From: Mizuhopecten yessoensis
Lineage: Eukaryota
Length of the DNA: 64,000 nucleotides
Assembly (NCBI RefSeq): GCF_002113885.1
Contig: NW_018408895.1
Span: forward strand, 657,724 to 721,723
Direction: 5' to 3'
Below are positions 496 to 62,025 of the stretch, one piece after another. Position numbers and translations under genes: made by a program. The notes beneath the pieces are model-generated. The model saw only the letters and a list, made by a program, of their open reading frames with translations, was not told the DNA's origin and searched no databases. Each line of letters opens with the position of its first letter. Within the stretch, counting starts at the first letter, position 1.

Positions 496-3365
496 CTACA
501 ATAAAGGGTACAGTTGTAAAAATAGGCTACATTTTCAAATCCTTATAACCCCTCCTCCTGTATATATACAGTAGTTATGTTACTGTATAGCAGGATATTT
601 CAGTGGGGATGATATTTTCACGATTTCACAGGTCGAAAATGTGATCACGAAAATATGATCCCCTGAATAATATGACAAGCGTAAAAATGAGTCACTTTAA
701 TAAATCTTCACAATCATATATGTCATGAAGTAGCAGACATGTGGTATGTGATCATGATGATTCATATAAAGAGTATGAATCTACTACTAATGATGTTTGA
801 AAATATGTTATATCACAATCTAATAGTTTTATTTATGATTTGTTTAACAAAAATAGTTACTTGCTGTCATCAAGCCAATTCATTTGACTATTTGACACTT
901 TATATGCTAATGTCAAGTTTCTTTGCTTAAATTAAAACACCCCAAAAATTTAGTTCCTTCACATGTCTAGATTGTGAAATTATAATCTGTGCAAATTTAA
1001 TTTTCTAATTTTGGGTCAAAATCGTGAAAATTTCAGCCAGCATAAATAACCTGTTATACAGTATCTCAGTGAAAACAAATCTATCTGTCTTGCCAGTGAA
1101 AAACAATTAATACTCAAAACTGAACTGTCGCTCAAACTTCATGTAACAGTTATAATTATAGAAACATCATGCTCCAATGACAACCTGCCTAGCAGGCGAA
1201 AACATGGCAGCAATGAGGTATAAAAGATACACATTATGGATACCAGGCTTCAGGAAATAATTACTTTATTTTTATATTTATTTCAATTAATACTCAAAAG
1301 TTTACGTCATTTGACTGTGAAATGACAGATCTACAGCATATATTTGATTTCTTGGCATGGTTACGAAATACGACTACACCATGTACCATGTATATAAATG
1401 TGACTGTTGTCTGAAATAGGATCTACCAGTACACATGTGCAGATCTCCATTTGATTTCTACTGACCAGTGTTATATACATGGTATATATTATATTATAAC
1501 CATCAATAGAATATCCGGAATTATTACATGTGGTGTACATACATATTTAATTTGTGTAGTAGTTTTCTGATGCAGTATTCAGGACTCCTAAAATTACTGT
1601 CTTAATATTTGGGTTAGAAATTTGTGACAAATTTAATATAGTAAATTGTACTGATACCTTATAAACTATGTATAGGTATATATATTAAAGCTTCATAAAT
1701 ATTCTTAATTAGATTTTGTTGGGGCTATTGAAAATGTTTGATATTCACTAAGAAAATAGAAATAAGATTTATAGTAGAACTTTTCAAAATCTGCCTGCAT
1801 TCATAAAATCAATACCCTTGTGTGTTGAAAGTAATGAAAATCACTAAAAGTCCAAAACACAAAATATCAAAATATCTTATGATATCAAGTAAAATACTGC
1901 AGAACATACAGAAATATACCATGTAAGTGAACAGTTTTTCAGTTTATTTTTTTAAATTATACATAATGCAAAGCCCTGGCCTATTGCCACCAAAACTGCA
2001 GACTGAAGAATTAGAAGGAGCTTGAGGAAAAGAAGGGTGTCGACTGCAATAGTGTCAAAAATTCAAACTCTCTACAATAAATAATGAACTTGTGTATTTT
2101 ATCTGCTATAGTTTTGTACACTTTGAATTACTCATGACAAATACTAACTTTCACAAGCCACATACAAATGTACCTTATCACGAAACCTCCAAACACAAAT
2201 TGAAATTGAATCTTAATAATTTGCCCTTTTTAATTTACAACTGTTAACATTAAGTTTCTAACTTTATCTTTTAAGTACATTTAAAGATTATGATCTTTAC
2301 AGCATAGACATTGTGCAGCTTACAGTATTTTTACCTTGTTTGTGACTCGTGCTTTTTCTTCAAGATTCACCAACTTTTTTGAGAACCCACTATATTATAT
2401 AATAATATATATAAATTTTAGAAAAAAATGGATTTTGTTATCTATTTCATCTCAAAGCTAAATTGGTGAAATGTTCACGATGCATTGTTACCTTTCAACA
2501 GATATTCTTTCGTCAGAGACTTTTCGGAAAGTTCACGTACATAACAGGTCCAGTACACTCTGCCGATTGAGCTACATAGCTGGAAAGACCTAGATAATAG
2601 CCCCATTGACCTATCTGAAATAGGTCTTTTGAGCTATTTTCAAGTAATTTTCTTTTTTTAAGGAAAACGGAATAAAGTCACATTTAAAAGAAGATTGTAT
2701 CATTAGGTTCATAACAAAAGCATTAAATATAAGTATTCTTTTTAAAAAATAATGATGTAAAGTAATCCGAAACTTTACATTTATGAAAAATGAAAATAAA
2801 CATCTAAATGTATGCTTTTTGTAGTCAACATTACCATTAACCTTATTGTTTTATGCAACTTTGCTTTAATTTAATAAAATTTGAAATCTGAGAAAATATA
2901 GCTCAATACAGCTATAATTTATAGGTGTATATAGAGCTCTATATAGCTCAATCGGCAGAGTGTACTGGACCTGCATAACACTTTGTCTTTCTCTTTACTC
3001 TCCTGTTGCCAATCATTGAAATTCTCTCTTCTGATTGGCTAATTTTTCACCAACCAGATTTTATGTATAATATATGAATAGAATTAAATTTCAGGATATA
3101 AGAGATTCAGATTTAACGGATGTAACATGCAAAAATTATAGAATAATTGTAACCTTTAAAATTGGAGCCATGCAACATAATTTATTAATATTCAATTATT
3201 CATTCTTGCTTTAATTTGGTTTACTCAATTTATTTTTATTTTGTTTTTACTTACAGTTTATAGACAGAAATTCAGTTACCCGATATTTTCAAGAAATTAT
3301 TCCTCTCCAACATTCATATTAACTAAAATATGTCTTGTTTTGCCTAAACTAGGTACTTTTATTAC

Positions 3366-4427
3366 CTTTGTTCTCCCGTTGATGTCAAAGTTTCCCAATT
3401 GTCCAGCACATTGTAAAATCACAGCATCCACAGAGGAAATTAAAAACTGGATATGCTCACACTCTGGTTCGGTTCCATCTACCCAAGTAATTATATCACC
3501 ACGGATTCTTCTGGTAGATTTCGTGGACTGGTCTATTACCTGTCCCCCAGCAAATGTCCCCGATTTGTGCAATGAATTCACATTTTCCAAGATTTCTAGT
3601 CCTTTAGACTCGCCCAGAAAATTGTCTACAACACATATACCATATTTATTGAGACAGTTTACAACATACTGGGCCAGAGCCTTATTCCTGCTCTCTATGA
3701 TAGATATGTAAGTTTGACGGGTATCTACATCCCCTTTGGGATACATAGTACTCTCAGAATGTCCAGACTTTGTCAAACTATAGTCAGGCTTGCACAAGGC
3801 TGAATCGTCTGATTCTAAAATGAACGTCTCGGAACTACCCTCGATGGTGAACACATCGCTATTTGAACTTTCCGAATATGAACCTGAAGGAAGGACTTCA
3901 TCAGACAAGTCCATACTACGGAATGACATACTCTCCACATCCTTGTCGTCTATGTCAGAGCCCTCACGTACACCACTTTGCGCCTCGGGTAGTTCACTGT
4001 CACCGGGCTGCTTACCCTTTTTAGGTCCATGCATTACAGAAGGAATCGGCTGACAGCTCTCGCCGCCTTCAGCATTTTTCGTAAGCATTATTGAATGCAT
4101 CGATGAAGAACATGTTGTATTCGATTCTAAATGTGAAACACTGATATTGTCACGTCCAACAGACTCCATACCAGAGTTGTTGACCTCGCCCACTCGGGTT
4201 TGTAATTCCGCGCTTGTCATGTCGAAGCCGTCATGACTATTTGTCTTGCTGTCGTTGTGTTGTTTTTTCGTGCATGTTTTTTTGTGATATTTCCAATCAT
4301 ATTTTTGATGTTCTCTACTGCAATACCAAGTCTTCTTGCACCTACTGCATAACTGGAGGTCATCGTGAGCCCCACACAACTGGCACACGATGTGTTCGTT
4401 CGAGATGTCACGTACGCCTTCCGCCAT
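3366..4427 (-). CDS. EGLN1: HIF prolyl hydroxylase (EGLN1/PHD2-type), coding exon 1: MYND zinc finger, acidic linker, start of the 2OG-Fe(II) oxygenase domain
   Basis: The ORF has a MYND pattern (CQLC...CSRCKKTWYCSREHQKYDWKYHKKTC) and PHD-type segments (YGICVVDNFLG, IRGDIITWVDGTEPEC, INGRTK). A GTAAT donor follows GRTK (GT at 3365-3364), the same junction as in vertebrate EGLN1. Confidence 0.95.
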
Positions 4428-10409: not shown

Positions 10410-13400
10410 AGGGTTATTAACTTCCGGTTGATGTCAATGGCCGATCTATGAAAAGCTCCGGGATTCTTCAACACTTATTCGATGTATCCTACGCTAAAAA
10501 ACGTTTAAAAGAACTGTTTTTCAGATATAACATCACTAGCGGTCGGTATGGGAGTGTTCATGCTATACTGCTCGGTATTTATGTGAAATAGAGGAGTCAA
10601 GACTGAGGTGTGTTAGCCAAACGTGAGCGATTTCAAATATGGCGGCGGGAAACTAAAGAAGACACGATCCGAGTTTGTGTTTGATGGAACAACTTTTTTG
10701 CATTAATCATTTATACATGCAACTACAGCTATACAATATTACTAAACTAAATGGACTGAAATATAAACTTACGGTGTGTGTACCAGGTAGAACCATACAA
10801 CTTACTATACAAGGGGAGATAACCCAGGTTCTAAACATGGCTACTGCTGGTGTTCCAAGAAAAAGTAGACAAGCCAGTCAAAANNNNNNNNNNNNNNNNN
10901 NNNNNNNNNNNNNNNNNNNNNNNNNNNNNNNNNNNNNNNNNNNNNNNNNNNNNNNNNNNNNNNNNNNNNNNNNNNNNNNNNNNNNNNNNNNNNNNNNNNN
11001 NNNNNNNNNNNNNNNNNNNNNNNNNNNNNNNNNNNNNNNNNNNNNNNNNNNNNNNNNNNNNNNNNNNNNNNNNNNNNNNNNNNNNNNNNNNNNNNNNNNN
11101 NNNNNNNNNNNNNNNNNNNNNNNNNNNNNNNNNNNNNNNNNNNNNNNNNNNNNNNNNNNNNNNNNNNNNNNNNNNNNNNNNNNNNNNNNNNNNNNNNNNN
11201 NNNNNNNNNNNNNNNNNNNNNNNNNNNNNNNNNNNNNNNNNNNNNNNNNNNNNNNNNNNNNNNNNNNNNNNNNNNNNNNNNNNNNNNNNNNNNNNNNNNN
11301 NNNNNNNNNNNNNNNNNNNNNNNNNNNNNNNNNNNNNNNNNNNNNNNNNNNNNNNNNNNNNNNNNNNNNNNNNNNNNNNNNNNNNNNNNNNNNNNNNNNN
11401 NNNNNNNNNNNNNNNNNNNNNNNNNNNNNNNNNNNNNNNNNNNNNNNNNNNNNNNNNNNNNNNNNNNNNNNNNNNNNNNNNNNNNNNNNNNNNNNNNNNN
11501 NNNNNNNNNNNNNNNNNNNNNNNNNNNNNNNNNNNNNNNNNNNNNNNNNNNNNNNNNNNNNNNNNNNNNNNNNNNNNNNNNNNNNNNNNNNNNNNNNNNN
11601 NNNNNNNNNNNNNNNNNNNNNNNNNNNNNNNNNNNNNNNNNNNNNNNNNNNNNNNNNNNNNNNNNNNNNNNNNNNNNNNNNNNNNNNNNNNNNNNNNNNN
11701 NNNNNNNNNNNNNNCACCCCACCCCACCCCTGGGTCAGAAGTGTAGCAAAAATAAAAGTCGACAGGTAAAAAAGAAGCCGACAAATGTAAATAGTGTACA
11801 TGGACAGACGTTTACAGAGAACATTACGTTCTTTTACACAAATGCTGACCAATTCAGGACTAAGTTAAGCGAATTTGAGGCCAGAACAAGAGACACCAAA
11901 CCCTTGATAATTGGAATATCCGAGGTAAAACCAAAAAAACCAAAGGGTAATTTGAATCAAGCAGAATTTAGTTTGGACTGACACAAGACTACACCATATT
12001 CACCAAAAATATTGATAATAACATAGGAAGAGGGATGATTCTGTATGCACACAGCAGCCTAAATGCGAGAGAAGTGGAAATGAGGACAACATGCGAGGAG
12101 AGCATATTAGTAAAAGTGAAACTGAAAGGGAACGATGAACTGGGAGACTTTAAATACAAAAAGTGATAACCAGCAAGCAGGGGACTACAAGCTGCGTGAG
12201 TGCATACAGGACACAGCAAGCAGGGGACTACAAGCTGCGTGAGTGCATACAGGACAACTACTTATTCCAGGCAACTACAAAACCTACGAGATGGAGAGGG
12301 ACAGACAACCCAAACATACTAGATCTGCTACTGACCAACAATGATAATTATATCAGTGACATAGAATACCAGAGCCCACTAGGTAAAAGTGACCACTGCG
12401 TCATTACCTTTAACTTTGTGTGCCAGGCAAACCTACAGACCACTCAAAAGAAGCGGTTTTGCTATAGGAAAGCAAACTTTAAGGCTATAATGAATGAACT
12501 AGATGGAACTGATTGGGAAAGTGACTTAAATCCGGCTAATGACATAAACACTAACTGAGACAAACTACACAACCATCTCCTTGAACTTGAAAATAAACAT
12601 GTGCCAATTTTTTCCATGAAAGGGACAAACAAACGGAAGAGGGAAATTCCACTAGATAAGGAAATAGTCATGGAGACCAGAAGGAAAAATGCATTAGCCA
12701 GGAAGTTTCTGAGAACCAAATCAGAAGAAGTGAGGAAAGAATACTACAAAGTGAGGAATAAAGTAAGTAAATCTACCAAGAAAGCAAGGAAACAATTCGA
12801 AAAGAACTTATGGAGAGAATCAAAGAGGAACCCTAAGAAAGTATGGCAATACATCAACGCAAAGAGTAAGACCAGACAGGGAATAGGGGACTTGTGTGTG
12901 GACCCATCCAACGATAAATCAGAGAAAACATCATGTGACAGAAAGAAAGCGGACATTCTATGTAAATATTTTGGAACTATGTTTACAAAGGAACCGGATA
13001 ACCATAACATACCAACATTTAAAAAGAGAACGATAATACATGACTAGGAAAAAAACGAAATAACATTAGTGGCGGTAGAAAAGGTCTTTAAAAAACTGGA
13101 AGTGGACAAATCACCGGGACTAGATAACCTACACCCAAAATTCCTCCAACAGTTGGCAGTTAATTTGGCTAAACCAATCTCCCTGATATATAAGCAATCA
13201 GTGAATTCGTAAGCGCCATATTCAAGAAAGGCAACAAAACACTAGCCGGGAACTACAGACCAGTGAGCTTAACATCAATAGTCGGTAAAACTATGGAAAG
13301 ATTGGTAAGAGACCTCATCATAAAACATATGACATTAAAGAAGCTATTCACCACAAGGCAATACGGGTTCATGGCAGGAAGATCAACCTCTCTTCAACTT

Positions 13401-22335: not shown

Positions 22336-23466
22336 TTACTCAGACAGATATGGTTTTGGCTGATCAAGAAATGCCTGGATGTTATTTGCTACCTTTTGGA
22401 GTACAACCTTATCTTTGCTGGAAAACAGATTGACCCCGTCATGAAAGTACAACGGGAGAATGCCCCTCTGGATATAGCCGAGCAGACGATACGTCATTGA
22501 CTTCACGCGAGCCGCCAGGAGTTCCTGCTGCCATTCGGTGTCAAAGGGATGATCCTCACACTCCCAGAACAGCACGTTCTTTAGGTGGTATGATGTCAAT
22601 TCTGACTTCGAACCTGGTGGACACCATACGTCTTCTTTCAGTCGCTTCATGATCCGTTGACTTTTCTTTCTACATGTTCCTTTAATGTCAATTCCATCCA
22701 GAAGTTCCTTTTCACATGCGGCGAAAGAAAGTGTCCAGTAGAATGGTTCTTTTGCAATTTCATTCACACCTACTTTTCTTATGGCTGACCTCTTTTGCTG
22801 CGAAGGCCAGGTACTGTTCGATCTAGGCCAGTGAAATTCGGGTTTAAACTCCAGCTGAGATTCGATCATAGGGCAAAGATCAATGCTGATTGGGTAGTGA
22901 ATGTCCGGGAATTTCACAGACAGGGTAGTAGCAGGAGAACTCGATATCCTGTCTGTTGTTATCAGGTTTCTGAATTTTGGCTGATTAACTGCCTCGCCAA
23001 CAAGTGACTTGAACCACCTCTTTACCTTGATTGGAACTATGTCATCATCGAATGTCATACTAGCAACTCCGTCGTTAAGTCCGTCAGCCTCCCATTGCTT
23101 CTTCAAGTATCCAATTTTAGTAAAAGACTGACCAACCGGGGGATCCGGTAACGCGTATCCTTTTTTCTCCACCACTTTATCCCCAGTGTTGTTAAATCCA
23201 TAGTATCTTGTTTTCCCAGGTGCCCAGACCAGTTTACCGACATCAACGATGACGTTGTAGTCAAATTCATCCGCTTTTTTCACCTTCAGGTGAGTGTTAT
23301 AACTGCCTACCTTGAGGGGCTGTATCAGGAAGCGTCTGTCCCGGGAATTAACGTATCTCAAAATCTCATCCACAAGAGGAAGCACTTTCGCAACGCTCCT
23401 TTTAGTTTCATCTCCTTTCATCAATACTTTTTTATCACAGTACCTGTTCAGGGTATTGTTGTCCAT
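22336..23466 (-). CDS. cGAS-like receptor (cGLR; Mab21/cGAS nucleotidyltransferase), copy 1, intact, 376 aa
   Basis: Active-site motif GSYNTHLKVKKADEFDY, SSPATTL, third acidic residue in ISIDLCP, WTLSFAACEKELL, LTSYHLKNVLFW and PLYFHDGVNLF. It has no vertebrate zinc-ribbon insertion. Confidence 0.93.
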   Translation of the reverse strand: MDNNTLNRYCDKKVLMKGDETKRSVAKVLPLVDEILRYVNSRDRRFLIQPLKVGSYNTHLKVKKADEFDYNVIVDVGKLVWAPGKTRYYGFNNTGDKVVEKKGYALPDPPVGQSFTKIGYLKKQWEADGLNDGVASMTFDDDIVPIKVKRWFKSLVGEAVNQPKFRNLITTDRISSSPATTLSVKFPDIHYPISIDLCPMIESQLEFKPEFHWPRSNSTWPSQQKRSAIRKVGVNEIAKEPFYWTLSFAACEKELLDGIDIKGTCRKKSQRIMKRLKEDVWCPPGSKSELTSYHLKNVLFWECEDHPFDTEWQQELLAARVKSMTYRLLGYIQRGILPLYFHDGVNLFSSKDKVVLQKVANNIQAFLDQPKPYLSE

Positions 23467-23920: not shown

Positions 23921-24098
23921 AATGCGTGTCATAACTGCCCACTCTAAGGGGTTGTATCAGGAAGCGTCTGTCCCGGGAATTAACGTATCTCAGTATATCA
24001 TAAACAAGAGGAAGCACTTTCGCCACGTTCCTTTTAGTTTCATCTCGTTTCATCAATACCCTTTGATCACAGTAACAGTTCAGGGTATAGTTGTCCAT
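23921..24098 (-). pseudogene. cGLR copy 2, 5' fragment only, truncated at an assembly junction
   Basis: MDNYTLNCYCDQRVLMKRDETKR...RVGSYDTH ends at the n at 23920. It may be an incompletely assembled gene. Confidence 0.7.
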
Positions 24099-29406: not shown

Positions 29407-29518
29407 ACACATCAACGATCAACAAAACGGTAGACGAGTTTGAATGAAAAACCATAACGAAACAAAGTAAACAATTCGTTATCTTGAAAAAAAAAAAAAA
29501 AAATGTTTTCCAATCAAT

Positions 29519-30743
29519 GACAGATATGGTTTTGGCTGATCAAGAAATGCCTGGATGTTATTTGCTACCTTTTGGAGTACAACCTTATCTTTGCTGGAAA
29601 GCAGATTGACCCCGTCATGGAAGTACAACGGGAAAATGCCCCTCTGGATATAGACGAGCAGACGATACGTCATTGACTTCACGCGAGCCGCCAGGAGTTC
29701 CTGCTGCCATTCAGTTTCAGAAGGATGATCCTCACACTCCCAGAAATGCACGTTCTTCAGGTGGTATGATGTCAGTTCTGACTTCAAACCTGGTGGACAC
29801 CATACGTCGTCTTTCAGTCGCTTCATGATGCGTTGACTTTTCTTTCTACATGTACCTTCAATGTCAATTCCATCCAGAAGTTCCTTTTCACATGCGGCGA
29901 AAGAAAGTGTCCAGTAGAATGGTTCTTTTGCTATGTCATTAACACCTATTTTCTTTATGGCTGACCTCTTCTGCTTCGAAGGCCAGTCAATGTTCGGTCT
30001 AGGCCAGTGAAATTCGGGTTCAAATTCTACCTGAGATTCGATCATAGGGCAAAGATCAATGCTGATTGGGTAGTCAATGTCCGGGAATTTCACAGACAGG
30101 GTAGTAGCAGGAGAACTCGATATCTTGTCTGTTTCTTAACTGCCTCGCCAACAAGTGACTTGAACCGACTCTACCTTGATTGGAACTATGTCATCATCGA
30201 ATGTCATACTAGCAACTCCGTCGTGAAGTCCGTCAGCCTCCCATTGCTTCTTCAAGCTCTCATTTTGAGTAAAATACTGACCAACCGGGGGATCCGGTAA
30301 CGCGTATCCTTTTCTCTTCACCACTTTATCCCTGGTGTTGTTAAATCCGTTACGTCCGTCAGCCTCCCATTGCTTCTTCAGGCACCCAATTTTAGTAAAA
30401 GACTGCCCAACAGGGGTATCCGGTAACGCGTATCATTTTTTCTCCACACCTTTATTCCTGGTGTTGTTAAATCCATAGTATCTTGTTTTCCCAGGTACCC
30501 AGGACAGCTTACCGACATCAACGATGACGTTGTAGTCAAATTCATCCCCTTTTTCCACCTTCAGGTGCGTGTTATAACTGCCTACCTTGAGGGGCTGTAT
30601 CAGGAAGCGTCTATCCCGGGAATTAACGTATCTCAAAATCTCATCCACAAGAGGAAGCACTTTCGCAACGTTCCTTTTAGTTTCATCTCGTTTCATCAAT
30701 ACTTTTTTTTATCACAGTACCTGTTCAGGGTATTGCTGTCCAT
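29519..30743 (-). pseudogene. cGLR copy 3, pseudogene
   Basis: +2 frameshift in a homopolymer run near 30705, TGA at 30435-30433, a 126-bp internal duplication and deletions near 30135 and 30170. The stop codon and about 0.5 kb of 3' flank are deleted. Confidence 0.9.
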
Positions 30744-44344: not shown

Positions 44345-46322
44345 ACACTTTTTATTTATTTTTATTTTTATTCAATTTTAATTTTTTATAAAGAACACAA
44401 TTACACACAAAGCAACAATCATACATTACATTGATTACAATTCCCTTCACAACGGACACCTCTTTTAAAGGGACCAATTATATACTGTACACACATCAAC
44501 ATACACACACACAGGGGGGGGGGGGGGGGTGCAAACCTTTCTTNNNNNNNNNNNNNNNNNNNNNNNNNNNNNNNNNNNNNNNNNNNNNNNNNNNNNNNNN
44601 NNNNNNNNNNNNNNNNNNNNNNNNNNNNNNNNNNNNNNNNNNNNNNNNNNNNNNNNNNNNNNNNNNNNNNNNNNNNNNNNNNNNNNNNNNNNNNNNNNNN
44701 NNNNNNNNNNNNNNNNNNNNNNNNNNNNNNNNNNNNNNNNNNNNNNNNNNNNNNNNNNNNAGGATAAGATTATCCACTATCAAATCAGCATCCTTTGAAC
44801 TGAATTGTCCAAATATAAATTCCTGTTTGTCAAAATTCAAATCAATATTACTGGTTGCAAGCAATTGTTTTAGTTCTCTCAAAATTTCACATACTTTACC
44901 ACAATCCCAAAATAGATGTTCAATTGTTTCTGGAAATCTTTTACAAAAAGTACAAGTTGAATTTTGGTTAATTCCCATTTTTTGTAGGAGTGTGTTTGTA
45001 GTTAAGATTCTATGGTTAATTCGGTATTGAAGCCATCTTAATTTAGTACTACAGTAGTTTTAAAAGGACATGCATAAATCTTTTTCCATAATTTGTCCTG
45101 AATGTTAAAAACCGTAGACCATTTCCTTTGTGACGTGGGTTTTGTATCATTTTGGCATAAAACAGCATAAATATCTTGTGCCCCTTTAGTCTTCCATCAT
45201 ATAATTTTAAGATTTAAAGGTATATTAGGTAAACAAATACTCTTTTCTAAAGCAAAGATTTCTTGTTTACTATTTATAAACTGTTTTATAGCACTAATTG
45301 TACTGTGAAAAGTTAAAAAAATGGACCTTATATCATATCTATGTTGAAATTCTACAAAATTATAAAAAGAACCATCTTCTTTAATTACATCATATATAAA
45401 AAGCACTCCTTTTCTATACCACTCTTTACAGAAAACAGGCTTATTGTTAATTTGGATATTGTGATTATACCACAAAGGATTTTCACATATTTTTTCACTA
45501 TATATACTGGACGACACTATTGTTTGATACCATGCTTCTAGAACGTTTTTCCAAAATTTATTTTTACATTCTTCACATATAATTTTCAATTGATGAATTC
45601 CACAATTAGCTAAAGAGAACTTTTCAATGTAGTTTTCAGTAATGAAAGTCCAACTAGCATCTTCTTTATAGATCCTCCGTACCCGCGTTGCCTTTAATGC
45701 TGTTATGAAAGACTTTGAATGAATCATTTTCAAACCACCAGGTTCGTATGACTTAATTATAACATCACGTTTAACTTTATCAGTCTTTCCGCACCACAAT
45801 TTTTTTTATAATATGTTATTAACCTTTTTTACACAAGAGTCATGAGGGTTTGGAAGAGCTATAAAAAGATGATAAAATTGTGAAATTAGCAATGTTTTAA
45901 TAATGGTTATCTTACCTATTGGAGTTAGATTTCTTCTATCCCACGAACTTATGAGAGATTTAAGTTTAACAAGTTTCTTATCAAAGTTTAATTTAACTAC
46001 TCTATGTAAATCAACATCATATTCAATGCCTGGCAAATTATAACGTGTACTTTCCCACAAAAGATTGTGCTCTGTTGTATATTCATTATTACTATATTTT
46101 TCACTGCCTATCCAGATTGCCTGGGTCTTGGTGAAATTCATTATAAGACCTGAAATTCTGGCATAATAGTATCATCAGCAAACAGAGATAAAAGAATTTC
46201 TTTGTTATTTAAAACATTACCGCTAATATCTGAATTATTTCTTAATAGAATAGATAAAATTTCAGCACATAAGATAAAAACATATGAAGAAACAGGGTCC
46301 CCCTTGACGGCATCCACGCTCC
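44345..46322 (-). mobile_element. Tx1/L1-clade LINE ORF2 3' portion, degraded
   Basis: GCRQG/DPVSSYVFILCAEIL, LTPIGKITIIKTLLISQ and CTFCKRFPETIEHLFWDC; A-rich tail near 44345-44390. Related to the element at 5720-6862. Confidence 0.87.
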
Positions 46323-46607: not shown

Positions 46608-47726
46608 TTACTTAGACAGATATGGTTTTGGCTGATCGAGAAATGCCTGGATGTTGTTTGCTACCTTTTGGAGTACAACATTATCCTTGTTGGAAAGCAG
46701 ATTCACACCGGTATGGAAGTACAACGGGAAAATGCCCCTCTGGATATAGACGAGCAGACGATACGTCATTGACTTCACGCGAGTCGCCATGAGTTCCTGC
46801 TGCCATTCGGTGTCAAAAGGATGATCCTCACACTCCCAGAACAGCACGTTCTTCAGGTGGTATGATGTCAGTTCTGACTTCATACCTGGTGAACACCATA
46901 CGTCGTCTTTCAGTCGCTTCATGATCCGTTGACTTTTCTTTCTACATGTTCCTTTAATGTCAATTCCATCCAGAAGTTCCTTTTCACATGCGGCGAAAGA
47001 ATATGTCCAATAGAATGGTTCTTTTGCTATGTCATTCACACCTATTTTCTTTATGGTTGATCTCTTCTGCTTCGAAGGCCAGTCACTGTTCGGTCTAGGC
47101 CAGTGGAATTCGGATCTAAATTCTACCTGAGATTCGATCATAGGGCAAAGATCAATGCTGATTGGGTAGTGAATGTCCGGGAATTTCACAGACAGGGTAG
47201 TAGCAGGAGAACTCGATATCCTGTCTGTTGTAATCAGGTTTCTGTATTTTGGCTGATTAACTGCCTCGCCAACAAGAGCTTTGAATATCCTCTTTACCTT
47301 GATTGGAACTATGTCATCTTCACATGTCATGCTCTTCATTCCGTCAGCCTCCCATTGCTGTTTAAGGCGCCCAATTTCAATAAAACCCTGCCCAACAGGA
47401 GGATCCGGAAGCGCGTATCCTTTTTTCTCCACCACTTTATCCCTGGTGTTGTTAAATCCATAGTATCTTGTTTTCCCAGGTCCCCAAACCAGCTTACCGA
47501 CATCAACGATGACGTTGTAGTCAAATTCATCCGCTTTTTCCACCTTCAGCTGCGTGTTATAACTGCCTACCTTGAGGGGCTGTATCAGGAAGCGTCTGTC
47601 CCGGGAATGAACGTACCTCAAAATCTCATCCACAAGAGGAAGCACTTTCGTTACGTTCCTTTTAGTTTCATCTCGTTTCATCAATACTTTTTTATCACAG
47701 TACCTGTTCAGGGTATTGTTGTCCAT
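46608..47726 (-). CDS. cGLR copy 4, intact, 372 aa
   Basis: Same catalytic motifs (GSYNTQLKVEKADEFDY, ISIDLCP); 4-aa deletion after WEADG relative to copy 1. Confidence 0.93.
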   Translation of the reverse strand: MDNNTLNRYCDKKVLMKRDETKRNVTKVLPLVDEILRYVHSRDRRFLIQPLKVGSYNTQLKVEKADEFDYNVIVDVGKLVWGPGKTRYYGFNNTRDKVVEKKGYALPDPPVGQGFIEIGRLKQQWEADGMKSMTCEDDIVPIKVKRIFKALVGEAVNQPKYRNLITTDRISSSPATTLSVKFPDIHYPISIDLCPMIESQVEFRSEFHWPRPNSDWPSKQKRSTIKKIGVNDIAKEPFYWTYSFAACEKELLDGIDIKGTCRKKSQRIMKRLKDDVWCSPGMKSELTSYHLKNVLFWECEDHPFDTEWQQELMATRVKSMTYRLLVYIQRGIFPLYFHTGVNLLSNKDNVVLQKVANNIQAFLDQPKPYLSK

Positions 47727-53629: not shown

Positions 53630-54759
53630 TTACTCAGACAGATATGGTTTTGGCTGTTCAAGAAATGCCTTGATGTTGTTAACTACCTTTTGGAGTACAG
53701 CCTTATCTTTGTTGGAAAACAGATTGACCCCGTCATGGAAGTACAGCGGGAGATTGCCCCTCTGGATATAGGCGAGCAGACGATACGTCATTGACTTCAC
53801 GCGAGCCGCCAGGAGTTCCTGCTGCCATTCGGTGTCAAAAGGATGATCCTCACACTCCCAGAACAGCACGTTCTTCAGGTGGTACGATGTCAGTTCTGAC
53901 TTCAAACCTGGTGGACACCATACGTCTTCTTTCAGTCGCTTTATGATCCGTTGACTTTTCTTTCAACATGTTCCTCCAATGTCAATTCCATCCAGAAGTT
54001 CATTTTCACATGCGGCAAAGGAAAGTGTCCAGTTGAATGGTTCTTTTGCAATTTCGTTCACACCTACTTTTCTTATGGCTGACCTCTTTTGCTGGGAAGG
54101 CCTTTTACTGTTCGGTCTAGGCCAGTGGCATTCAGGCCTTAATTCCAGCTGAGATTCGATCATAGGGCAAAGATCAATGCTGATTGGGTAGTCAATGTCC
54201 GGGAATTTCACAGACAGGGTAGTAGCAGGAGAACTTGATATCCTGTCTGTTGTTATCAGGTTTCTGTATTTTGGCTGATTAACTGCCTCGCCAACAAGCG
54301 ACTTGAACCACCTCTTTACCTTGATTGGAACTATGTCATCATCGAATGTCATACTAGCAACTCCGTCGTTAAGTCCTTCAGCTTCCCATTGCTTCTTCAA
54401 GCTCTCATATTGAGTAAAATACTTACCAACTGGGGTATCCGGTAACTCGTATCCTTTTTTCTCCACAGCTTTATCCCGGTGTTGTTAAATCCATAGTATC
54501 TTGTTTTCCCAGGTGCCCAGACCAGCTTACCGACATCAACGATGACGTTGTAGTCAAATTCTTCTGCTTTTTCCACCTTCAGGTGCGTGTTATAACTGCC
54601 TACCTTGAGGGGCTGTATCAGGAAGCGTCTGTCCCGGGAATGAACGTATCTCAAAATCTCATCCACAAGAGTAAGCACTTTCGCCACGTTCCTTTTAGTT
54701 TCATCTCGTTTCATCAATACTTTTTGATCACAGTAACAGTTCAGGATATAGTTGTCCAT
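53630..54759 (-). pseudogene. cGLR copy 5, full length with one frameshift and one nonsense codon
   Basis: 1-bp deletion near 54477 and AGA>TGA at 53965-53963; otherwise colinear with copy 1. Confidence 0.85.
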
Positions 54760-55811
54760 TTTCCAGCTGTATGGAGCTTTAACAAGTTGGATTTCGAGTT
54801 CAGACTTTGATGTTATTGATGTTTAGCTGAATTATTTTTCTATTGGAGCACACGAGTCCGGCGTCCTACCACTTGACTACCTCCTATTTCCCGTATTAGA
54901 CCCCGCCCATCTGCCCCCAGGGAAGCCAAACCCTCCCTGAATACAAACCTGAGGCCCCTTTGTCCAAAGACGTTCTGGAATAAATTGTTGTGGGGTATAA
55001 CTGACACAATGATTCGATAACTTTTGTTTTTTGTAGGTCTGTGTTACGTACATGTATTTATTTATCTGTTTCTTTCATAATATTGTCGTCACTGGTAACT
55101 GTTGTTGCTAAAATATAACCCAAAACCTGCTGCTGCATGGCCTATTCCGCCTACTATTATTAAAGAAATGATAAAACGCATTGTGAGCTTTGTTGATAAG
55201 GATATGGAGATACCTTGTGAGTTACCATCACCCTAGTGTCAAGTGATACATAAATTTTGTTTACTGGTTTTTTTTAACACAATATAGCTTATCGAGTGAC
55301 CGACTTTCGAGCCGTCAGCCGTCTTGTTTGTGTCATATCGTAAGAAAGTAGTACAATACTGCTGGATGTGGATACTTAATTTACCTTGGAAGATATCTTA
55401 TTTGGACAAATTATCACTAGTTACTTTAATTGTCAACAGTTTTTAAATGTTTCAATGTTCCTGAATTGATGTTCTGGTAATATCATTAACTTTGTATGTG
55501 ACCAAACTACTGTGATCATACGCCTAAAACGGAAATAAAACCCAGACATTCTCAGAACCAAAATGCTTTATTTAGTATTGAGGGAGCAATACTGATCTTG
55601 TAATTTATCAAATTATAAAAGATACAGTGCATATTATATAAGATGTTTTATATCTTATATAATAATATACAAGAGAGATATCTTATATATATGAGTTATC
55701 TTATACAATATATAAGATATTTCATTTATTTTATAAGAATAAATGTTGAGCTGGCTGCCAAAGAATCTACAACTCTTATTCCAAAGACCGATGTATGATC
55801 ACATCATTTGC

Positions 55812-55917
55812 GAAAGCGAAAGTAGTTGTTTCATCATGTTTTCCGAAACGAAAAGAAGCTAAAAATAAAAAGATAAGACAAGCAAATATAAAGGGAGAGA
55901 TCACACTCATGCGCAGT
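55812..55917 (+). promoter_or_regulatory. Putative IRF-responsive core promoter of cGLR copy 6
   Basis: GAAAGCGAAAGT (55812-55823) is a full match to the IRF-E consensus. Also GAAACGAAAA (55845-55854), TATAAAG (55887-55893) and an Inr-like GCAGTT near 55915. Confidence 0.6.
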
Positions 55918-55943
55918 TTAAACGTTGCACGAACAATACAATC

Positions 55944-57071
55944 ATGGATAACAAAATTCTGAACCAATATTATGAGGAAAATGTGAAAATGCTGCGTAAC
56001 GAAACGGAAAAAAATACAAAAGAGGTGTTACCACTGGTGGATGATATATTAAGGTATGTTCATCAGAGAGACAAACGATTCATGATACAAACAGTGAAGG
56101 TTGGAAGCTACCATACTCACCTCAAAGTGAAGCGGGCTGGCGAGTTTGACTTCAGTGTGGTCGTCGATGTGGGGAAACTGTCGTGGATAGCAAACAACAA
56201 TTCGAGGTTCTATGGTTTTGACAACGTCAATCGCAAAGTTGAGAGTAGCATATTACCTCTACCAAGCCCCCCTGCTGGTCAGTGTTTTACTCAAATCGGA
56301 AGCCTAAAAGCTAAGTGGGAATCTGAGGGACTTGAGGATGGAGGTGCAAGTTTGACATTCAACAACGATATAGTGCCAATTAAAGTAAAGAGAAGATTCA
56401 AAGCTCTTGTAAGCGAGGCTGTTAACCAACCCAAATTGAGAAGTCGTGTCACTACAGACCGGATTTCGGATTCACCGGCCATTACGCTCTCTGTAAAACT
56501 TCCGAATACTGCTTATCCGATCAGCATCGATTTATGTCCTATGATTGAATCTAAACTGGAATTCAGAAGTGACTTCAATTGGCCAAGACCGTTGGCCAAA
56601 TGGCCGTCTAGTGAAAAGATTTCCTGTATAAAGGATGTAGGAATACATGAAGTAGCCAAGTCGCCATTTTATTGGACACTGTCTTTCGCTGCATGTGAAA
56701 AGGAGCTTGTGGAGGGCATTGATGAAAATGGGACATGCAGAAGGAAAAGTCTTCGTGTCCTGAAGACTTTGAAAGAAAATATCTGGTGTAAACCAGGTGT
56801 CAAGAAGGGTCTGACATCATACCATCTGAAGAACGTGCTGTTCTGGGAGTGTGAGGATCATCCCTTTGACACCGAATGGCAGCAGGAGCTCCTGGAGACT
56901 CGCGTGAAGTCAATGACGTATCGTCTACTCGGCTATCTTCAGAGGGGAAATCTGTTGTTGTACTTCCATACCGGGGTTAATCTGCTCTCCAGCAAAGATA
57001 AAGGCGTGCTTCAGCAGGTAGCGAACATTATTAAGACATTTCTCGATCAGCCAAACCAATATTTGTGCTGA
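55944..57071 (+). CDS. cGLR copy 6, divergent paralog, intact, 375 aa, head-to-head with copy 5
   Basis: GSYHTHLKVKRAGEFDF, DSPAITL, ISIDLCP, WTLSFAACEKEL and LTSYHLKNVLFW. Confidence 0.93.
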   Translation: MDNKILNQYYEENVKMLRNETEKNTKEVLPLVDDILRYVHQRDKRFMIQTVKVGSYHTHLKVKRAGEFDFSVVVDVGKLSWIANNNSRFYGFDNVNRKVESSILPLPSPPAGQCFTQIGSLKAKWESEGLEDGGASLTFNNDIVPIKVKRRFKALVSEAVNQPKLRSRVTTDRISDSPAITLSVKLPNTAYPISIDLCPMIESKLEFRSDFNWPRPLAKWPSSEKISCIKDVGIHEVAKSPFYWTLSFAACEKELVEGIDENGTCRRKSLRVLKTLKENIWCKPGVKKGLTSYHLKNVLFWECEDHPFDTEWQQELLETRVKSMTYRLLGYLQRGNLLLYFHTGVNLLSSKDKGVLQQVANIIKTFLDQPNQYLC

Positions 57072-58158
57072 TAATTCGCCACATGTATGCTTTATGCAGA
57101 AATTCTGGTAAAATCACCTCTCGAATTTGTGTTAACTGTGATTTCTGTGTAACAGCATATATGTATTTATGTTGAATGGTTCGCACCTATCAGTCAAGCA
57201 GCAAGCTATGTAATAGTACGATAGTCAATAAAAACCAGAAAGACATAATGATTGAAAATGGCCGTTTTTATTAAAACGACATAACATAAAAATACATGTA
57301 CGACATAACATAAAATACATGTTACAATACATGTATTGAACACCCTCCTGAGAAGGTGTTCCATAGACTGCATTTCATAATCAAATGCAATGCCATTCTC
57401 CTAATGACTATAGTAGNAAGCTATGTAATAGTACGATAGTCAATAAAAACCAGAAAGACATAATGATTGAAAATGGCCGTTTTTATTAAAACGACATAAC
57501 ATAAAAAAATACATGTACGACATAACATAAATTACATGTTACAATACATGTATTGAACACCCTCCTGAGAAGGTGTTCCATAGACTGCATTTCATAATCA
57601 AATGCAATGCCATTCTCCCAATGACTATAGTAGGTGAGGGGACAAGAAAACGCCACCTTGCACATTGAGCCCTTTCATGGATTCGAAAAGACGTACATAA
57701 TGTATGTAACATTTTGCTACATAATGAAATAGCACAAGATCTAATATTTTAGGTTTGTTAAAATTTAATCACATACATGTCCCTTAGTATTACTATTAGT
57801 AGCCTGCTGTATTATTCCGAAATTATTTTTGTTTTTTACTCATTGTTTTCTCCTTTTTTTATGTTCCCAATCAATTCAGACATTTGTGTTAATAACACAT
57901 ATGTTTAAAATATTCCTAACCTTAAACATTTGTTCTCTGATAACGTATATTACGTTTTGATTCTTAACTGCTTTATATTTGCTTGGTTAATGGTATATAT
58001 GAAATGGATTAATTTCATCGACTTTGTAAATGTTACCATTATTATCATGATTTATCTACACTGAATCAGTAAGGTGGAATGGTGAGTGAGTCCTTATTTG
58101 AGCATGCATGTTGTTTTGTTACAGCTCTCTGATATTCCTATTATCATTTTGAAATAAG

Positions 58159-60879: not shown

Positions 60880-62025
60880 ATGGTGTCCATGCGTCTACTC
60901 TTTGGATGGAGTGTTCCATTCAGGATTCGACTGATGGCGGCTGGAAACTTGTTCTTTTGTTTCTACTTTGCGTTCATGACCGTTCTCGTCACTGTGGTCT
61001 GTTGGTCAGAAATACTACCCGACATCTTCATGGGTGACAAGGATCGGATACGCAAACATAAGCTCTTTATTTTATTTACCTTCCTCAATGCTGTCGGTAA
61101 CTTCGTTCTGTGCGTCTTCACCGATACCAGTATCAAACGTGCGGTTGAGATGACATCCAAAGACTATATGACATCGACATCGAGCGTTGGCGCGGGAGAC
61201 CGGATGACTAAGCCGAGTAAAGACGCGGGACAATCTAGGTTGAATAGCAAAGATTCTCAGACAATATCTACCATGAATAATAGCAACACCATGAAACAGA
61301 CTACGAAAAAGGGAGCCAGTATGGTAAAGAAACGAAAAGCAGGTGAGGCAAAGAGTGCAGACAAAGAGAGCATCAAGGACAAATATTTGGAAATGAAAGG
61401 CAAAGGAAAGGACGGAGGTAATGACAAAGTCGACAACGAACCGACGTTTTGTGACACTTGTAACGTGATTCCTCCTCCCAGATCACACCACTGCGTTTTG
61501 TGCCAAACGTGTATCCTAAAGCGCGACCACCACTGTTTCTTCATGACAGTGTGTGTCGGCTACTTCAATCAAAAGTACTTCGTTATGTACTGTTTCTACA
61601 TGATGATCGGCACGTTCTATGGAATGTTTCTGATTGTGCTACATCTAAAGAAGCTGTATGACGTCACATTTAATGGTCCCCAGACATTTATATTCCTGTT
61701 GGTGGACATGATTGGAAAACTAGCCACCAATGTTCCCATCGAGTTTGGCTATATATTCTTAGTGTTTCTCATGTACGCCTGTATTACTGCTGGACTTATA
61801 GCCGCCGGATTGTGGTTTTGGCAGTTACAAATCACTGTGGCCGGACAGACGACACATGAAGCGACGTCGATTGGCTCTGGAAAATTTTCTAAATCTAAAA
61901 TTGATAATCTGAAAGATGTTTTCGGAAAATATTGGTTATTAACAATAATTTTACCATTGCCTCTTCCACAACCTCCATTTGAAGATACGTTTGTAAAAAA
62001 CAGCAATAGTAAAAATATTCAATAA
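60880..62025 (+). CDS. DHHC palmitoyltransferase, ZDHHC22-like, single ORF, 381 aa
   Basis: Cys-rich domain CDTC...RSHHCVLCQTCILKRDHHCFFMTVCVG, four hydrophobic segments and a GQTTHE (TTxE) motif. DHHCFF resembles ZDHHC22. Confidence 0.92.
   Translation: MVSMRLLFGWSVPFRIRLMAAGNLFFCFYFAFMTVLVTVVCWSEILPDIFMGDKDRIRKHKLFILFTFLNAVGNFVLCVFTDTSIKRAVEMTSKDYMTSTSSVGAGDRMTKPSKDAGQSRLNSKDSQTISTMNNSNTMKQTTKKGASMVKKRKAGEAKSADKESIKDKYLEMKGKGKDGGNDKVDNEPTFCDTCNVIPPPRSHHCVLCQTCILKRDHHCFFMTVCVGYFNQKYFVMYCFYMMIGTFYGMFLIVLHLKKLYDVTFNGPQTFIFLLVDMIGKLATNVPIEFGYIFLVFLMYACITAGLIAAGLWFWQLQITVAGQTTHEATSIGSGKFSKSKIDNLKDVFGKYWLLTIILPLPLPQPPFEDTFVKNSNSKNIQ

Follow-up and report, generated by a model that had tools for sequence, protein, structure and literature searches.

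The 64-kb stretch of Mizuhopecten yessoensis DNA analysed here, called the window in the following, contains a cluster of single-exon Mab-21/cGLR genes, with A-type copies on the minus strand and one B-type copy on the plus strand. The A-type copies comprise the intact copies 1 (22336-23466) and 4 (46608-47726), the pseudogenes copy 3 (29518-30708) and copy 5 (53630-54759), and an N-terminal fragment of about 59 codons (23922-24098). Copy 3 is disrupted by an internal duplication (about 126 nt), by small indels and by a 25-nt deletion, and copy 5 by a frameshift close to codon 100 and a TGA in frame. The B-type gene, copy 6 (55944-57071), is an intact, single-exon open reading frame of 375 residues with the Pfam domains Mab-21 and Mab-21_C. 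It stands head-to-head with copy 5, its closest inverted partner, and the arms of the inverted repeat formed by these two copies occupy 53638-53974 and 56730-57066. On its 3' side, copy 6 is followed by a DHHC palmitoyltransferase gene (60880-62025, plus strand; Pfam DHHC).

The two Pfam domains (PF03281 and PF20266) score above the cut-off in copies 1, 4 and 6, and the relatives of the copies in the PDB are cGLR1, MAB21L1 and cGAS. The scallop copies thereby share the combination of a Mab-21 nucleotidyltransferase (NTase) domain and a Mab-21_C domain with animal cGAS-like receptors (cGLR1, PDB 8gjy). In a family alignment of 29 sequences, G54/S55, E67/D69 and D196 show no or almost no variation; we take G54, E67, D69 and D196 to match the cGAS catalytic pattern (G-S, E-x-D ... 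D). Judged by sequence, the copies belong to the cGAS-like receptor family (Mab-21 NTases) and are predicted immune sensors. Among themselves, the A-type copies are near-identical for the most part, apart from two mosaic patches with 10-18 differing sites per 60 nt, which align to positions 56244-56346 and 56556-56616 of copy 6 and lie, for example, at about 23070-23190 in copy 1.

In the initial annotation, copy 6 was described as diverged from the minus-strand copies up to about 56810 and nearly identical to them thereafter, with an apparent conversion tract extending to 57065. We aligned the copies with MAFFT and counted the differences on the alignment. Upstream (55944-56810), copy 6 differs at 294 of 864 sites (34%; 34-35% against every A-type copy). 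Over the following 137 nt (56811-56947), we recount exactly the nine differences from copy 1 that had been counted by hand, as well as the perfect run of 59 nt at 56829-56887. Copy 4 likewise differs from copy 6 at nine sites of this tract, copy 5 at ten and copy 3 at 14, and the divergence between copy 6 and the A-type copies amounts to 6.6-7.3%. The corresponding intervals in the A-type copies are 22463-22598 (copy 1), 29639-29775 (copy 3), 46735-46871 (copy 4) and 53757-53893 (copy 5). The best-scoring low-divergence segment runs from 56811/12 to 56926/36, about 125 nt, and in a site-shuffling test its score was reached in none of 2000 shuffles for any A-B pair. The downstream end at 57065 was overstated: the Mizuhopecten island ends at 56926/36, or at 56947 at most. 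From 56948 to 57068, divergence is back at 31 of 121 sites (26%; 24-26% against the A-type copies up to the stop codon), and this 3' end of copy 6 (56948-57071, plus strand), with a dS of 0.9-1.3, is not homogenised in Mizuhopecten.

Inside the tract, 5-6 fixed differences separate copy 6 from all A-type copies, so the last event in Mizuhopecten was not recent (dS ~0.2). Judged against other genera, most of these differences are derived in copy 6, which dates the last event to roughly the time when the A-type copies radiated (dS of 0.17 between copies 1 and 4). The GC content at third codon positions is 0.60-0.69 in the tract vs 0.42-0.47 upstream in Mizuhopecten and Pecten, and the shift is weaker in Ylistrum; this comparison is confounded by codon content. 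The raised value fits biased conversion, but it could also reflect codon content.

The public protein model of copy 6 (55944-56801) has 286 residues; it matches the open reading frame up to residue 284 and continues with two unrelated residues. It thus ends just 5' of the island, while the open frame runs on for 89 codons and the orthologs have 373-375 residues. Probably, the annotation is truncated, or was wrongly spliced, at the GT near position 56797. With this model stopping just before the island, protein-level surveys would miss it.

For comparison, loci from Pecten maximus (two) and Ylistrum balloti (one) were obtained via the closest proteins. The layout of the locus is common to all three genera, with A-type genes on the minus strand and then B-type and DHHC genes on the plus strand. 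The DHHC neighbour is a synteny anchor, and copy 6 is the conserved B-type locus. In Pecten maximus, B-type cGLR and DHHC gene lie in a block that is present twice in tandem, and long tandem-repeat arrays follow both B-type copies. These copies, B and B2, are 6.6% apart upstream and 11-19% apart in their 3' ends, because each has been converted separately. Two further contigs carry a single gene type per run and give no clear A/B test, and three small Mizuhopecten contigs are allelic copies of copies 3, 4 and 5.

An abrupt switch within one gene of a fragmented public assembly (988 Mb in 82,659 contigs) might also be an artefact, in which the 5' part of copy 6 was joined to the 3' end of another copy at the shared 59-mer, or in which copies were collapsed. 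Contigs from four independent runs, each of a different study, were placed on 55700-57400. In all four, the contig graph breaks at 56829-56887, where the 59-mer forms a deeper shared node that no contig bridges, as such an artefact would have it. The continuity of copy 6 across the 59-mer thus rests on the original assembly and on synteny. Both sides of this node are nevertheless covered. A 2-kb contig connects unique upstream sequence with the tract, crossing 56811 and reaching 56855, and the contigs of the A-type copies stop fitting exactly at 56811/12. On the other side, three DNA runs from different studies yield a contig at single-copy depth (56858-57187) that matches the window without a single difference, extends into the unique flank and includes variants found in no copy but copy 6. 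Moreover, the Mizuhopecten genome assembly contains no extra B-type copy or other source for a chimeric 3' end, and the B-type gene followed by DHHC recurs in syntenic position in the two other assemblies, with the same island. We regard an assembly artefact as exceedingly improbable.

Further observations concern copy 6 and its surroundings. A run that we guess to be RNA has contigs over 55931-57195 and none further upstream, which suggests unspliced transcription of copy 6 through the boundary. In independent individuals, the gene also occurs in second haplotypes, with five differences in 116 nt (55963-56078) and eight in 199 nt (56441-56639), and local allelic diversity is thus high. Directly 3' of copy 6, at 57166-57633, contig depth rises 20- to 80-fold in DNA runs, and a 220-nt unit is tandemly duplicated here (57197-57416 and 57412-57633, 97% identity); this segment is a high-copy repeat or the edge of a transposon.

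When the upstream part and the tract are analysed separately, as the initial annotation had proposed, the resulting topologies conflict. The upstream tree separates A and B types with full support (100/100) and unites the B-type genes of the three genera in one clade, and the A/B duplication is older than the split between Mizuhopecten, Pecten and Ylistrum. In the tract tree, by contrast, the A- and B-type genes of Ylistrum group together (100/100), as do Pecten B, A1 and A2 (99/97), and copy 6 is nearest to the Mizuhopecten A-type copies. Approximately unbiased (AU) tests reject a B-type clade for the tract (p = 1e-4) and a clade of the five Mizuhopecten copies for the upstream part (p = 2e-7). 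This five-copy clade is not rejected for the tract (p = 0.32), but it is itself weakly supported, the island being short (137 nt). The same switch is seen at individual sites. For the quartet of copy 6, copy 1, Pecten B and Pecten A2, 108 upstream sites group the genes by type and nine by species, compared to 0 and 13 in the tract (Fisher p = 2e-12), and four other quartets behave in the same way; over the quartets, no tract site groups by type and 13-23 group by species. In the upstream part, we found no additional conversion tracts; the sites grouping by species are scattered there, nine against 16 in the 'cross' noise class.

Could the A- and B-type genes have remained alike in the tract through very strong purifying selection, either on the protein or, in the form of an embedded RNA or regulatory element, on the nucleotide sequence? 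The tract does overlap the most conserved block of the family (residues 281-312), and dN is low inside it. However, the comparison with orthologs contradicts this reading. Upstream, divergence between A- and B-type genes within a species is 34-37%, and that between orthologs 21-25%. In the tract, within-species divergence falls to 6-7%, whereas orthologs still differ by 15-23%. Likewise, dS is not uniform along the gene: within species, A-B dS is 0.15-0.38 in the tract (0.20-0.24 in Mizuhopecten) and saturated upstream, while ortholog dS is 0.5-2.0 in the tract and 0.9-1.7 upstream. Synonymous sites of the tract are thus free to change between species and yet common to paralogs within species, which indicates conversion after speciation and not constraint. 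This ortholog dS rules out constraint at the nucleotide level. Furthermore, the second helix of the tract (residues 313-335), although it belongs to the parts with the lowest conservation in the family, is still shared within species. The A- and B-type genes of Ylistrum have six replacements in residues 306-323 that are absent from the other species, and R322 is common to both Pecten types. Together with the site patterns described above, these data make constraint without conversion a very improbable explanation.

The limits of the homogenised segment differ between genera. Given in window coordinates, it extends from 56811/12 to about 56930-56936 in Mizuhopecten (A-B dS ~0.2), from 56814 to 57064 in Pecten B (dS 0-0.15), from 56814 to 57018 in Pecten B2 (dS ~0.3-0.4) and from 56839 to 56981 in Ylistrum, where a single difference is found in 143 nt. 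The 5' ends therefore lie within 30 nt of each other (56811-56839), the 3' ends are spread over about 140 nt, and the ages vary. Since the 3' limits differ while the 5' limits cluster, we conclude that the events were independent and recurrent.

The near-coincidence of the left limits might instead point to a single old exchange, such as a crossover between inverted copies before the genera split, or to one event per lineage. In the same direction, the similarity between Pecten B and the A-type genes passes the stop codon and extends more than 1 kb into the flank at 88-90% identity (10-12% divergence); Pecten B thus lacks the two-sided patch seen in Mizuhopecten, ending at about 56936, and in Ylistrum, ending at about 56981. 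A larger segmental exchange or crossover may have taken place in Pecten. Nevertheless, the clustering by species and the species-specific states require events after the split, and the return of divergence downstream in Mizuhopecten and Ylistrum marks an internal patch and no terminal swap. Even in Pecten, the coding 3' end is without synonymous difference (dS 0-0.15) beside a flank that is 10-12% diverged, which implies an older, longer exchange overlain by a younger one. With the differing extents in B and B2, at least two layered events are required there, and the layering and the different ends and ages of the tracts call for several independent events overall. A single exchange, or one per lineage, is consequently improbable. 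In a cross-genus comparison intended to assign donor and acceptor, no homology of the Pecten flank to the window was detectable. The proposal of recurrent ectopic conversion is thus supported: the same island was homogenised separately in three genera, the topologies conflict, and ortholog dS is normal.

At the protein level, the tract opens at the SYHLKN helix, the most conserved motif of the family, and S292, Y293, H294, L295, N297, L299, F300, E302, C303, P307 and W312 are invariant within residues 281-312. An AlphaFold2 model (mean pLDDT 83.7) shows a loop at residues 282-291 and helices at 292-305, 309-312 and 314-334. The alignment with the best solved relative, cGAS-like receptor 1 (8gjy), spans residues 146-374 and takes in the SYHLK helix. 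In the loop just 5' of the tract, the sequence varies, as does the length in relation to 8gjy, and six differences fall within the 10 nt before 56811. According to the model, the Mizuhopecten tract (residues 290-335) corresponds to a predicted loop-bounded two-helix hairpin of Mab-21_C. The earlier suggestion that conversion keeps the C-terminal helical lobe shared thus applies, in Mizuhopecten, to this hairpin and not to the lobe as a whole.

Taken together, interlocus (non-allelic) gene conversion between the minus-strand A-type copies and copy 6, the plus-strand B-type gene, has very probably produced the island. Its persistence could be explained as follows. Purifying selection on the SYHLKN helix would have kept nucleotide identity sufficient for heteroduplex formation, and each conversion would then refresh this identity, including that of the adjoining, poorly conserved second helix. 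Just upstream, the 34%-diverged sequence and the variable loop would halt the extension of the tract, and selection against the import of the sensing/NTase core of the other type may contribute. As the partners are inverted, non-crossover events would homogenise them without deleting genes. We infer that the island is confined by a mismatch barrier or by selection.

A different role of selection is conceivable, in which the hairpin (residues 290-335) is itself a selected shared module that is matched between the A- and B-type receptors of one species and that would be in contact with the active site or with a partner or antagonist common to both. If so, both receptors would receive new variants of the hairpin through conversion, and the ligand-sensing body would remain specific to its type. 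The replacements that are shared by A- and B-type genes within a species, six of them in Ylistrum, and the loop-bounded limits are compatible with such a module without demonstrating it. A self-sustaining island of identity explains the pattern equally well, and we consider the selected module, together with its proposed contacts, unlikely.

Downstream of the island, the variants had been described as a patchwork, with RGNL shared between copies 6 and 5 and FHTGVNLLS between copies 6 and 4. The sharing is real, but it does not reflect additional conversion, as these states are found in all A- and B-type copies of Pecten and Ylistrum. Patchwork micro-conversions are thereby ruled out for both motifs, which are retained ancestral states. 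Copy 4 is the earliest-branching Mizuhopecten A-type copy in the upstream tree, and simple descent therefore accounts for the T/D and L/F states. A single site, N336 of copy 5, could be a micro-conversion or a reversal.

In general, gene conversion requires local identity, and regions beyond a divergence threshold escape it, leaving islands of concerted evolution; the fetal globin and opsin genes are examples of classical interlocus conversion. Models of such conversion with escape by divergence are reportedly found in the work of Walsh (in 1987) and of Teshima and Innan (in 2004). The scallop genes resemble the classical cases in that a homogenised island lies beside diverged sequence. They differ in that the flanking coding sequence is synonymously saturated and the island persists in three genera, as an unusually small and old remnant.

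The closest analogue is the IFIT1/IFIT1B pair of mammals, which undergoes recurrent partial gene conversion (Daugherty et al., 2016, eLife, PMC4887208). There, the 5' two-thirds of the genes (~950 nt) are homogenised to 97-98% identity, with a breakpoint that repeatedly falls at a subdomain pivot, and the remainder is type-specific (PMC4887208). In both systems, ancient innate-immunity paralogs at a conserved locus have one part of the gene repeatedly homogenised within species, the breakpoint recurs at a structural boundary, and whole-gene trees are confounded. By contrast, the scallop island measures just 125-250 nt, lies near the 3' end and connects inverted partners, and it belongs to the Mab-21/cGLR genes of bivalves, where it is known from sequence comparison. 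In the searchable literature, we found no relevant report of gene conversion or concerted evolution in the cGLR/Mab-21 family. As an instance of partial gene conversion, the island is clear-cut but not out of the ordinary, and it involves no new mechanism.

Its interest is that of a clean invertebrate case, in a family of pattern-recognition receptors, where concerted evolution is confined to part of the gene. The split between A- and B-type cGLRs of scallops predates three genera despite the young-looking 3' ends, and cGLR trees or orthology calls that are based on the C-terminal domain will mislead. Furthermore, the natural chimeras can be used to find out which part of a cGLR determines its specificity for ligand or product.

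Elsewhere in the window, a 376-residue open reading frame on the minus strand (3297-4427) has an N-terminal MYND zinc finger (Pfam) and, in its C-terminal part, presumably a resemblance to the beginning of EGLN/PHD-type prolyl hydroxylases. Probably, the frame represents exon 1 of a gene of this type. The window also contains two runs of N, at 10884-11714 (831 bases) and 44544-44760 (217 bases), which are gaps or masked sequence.
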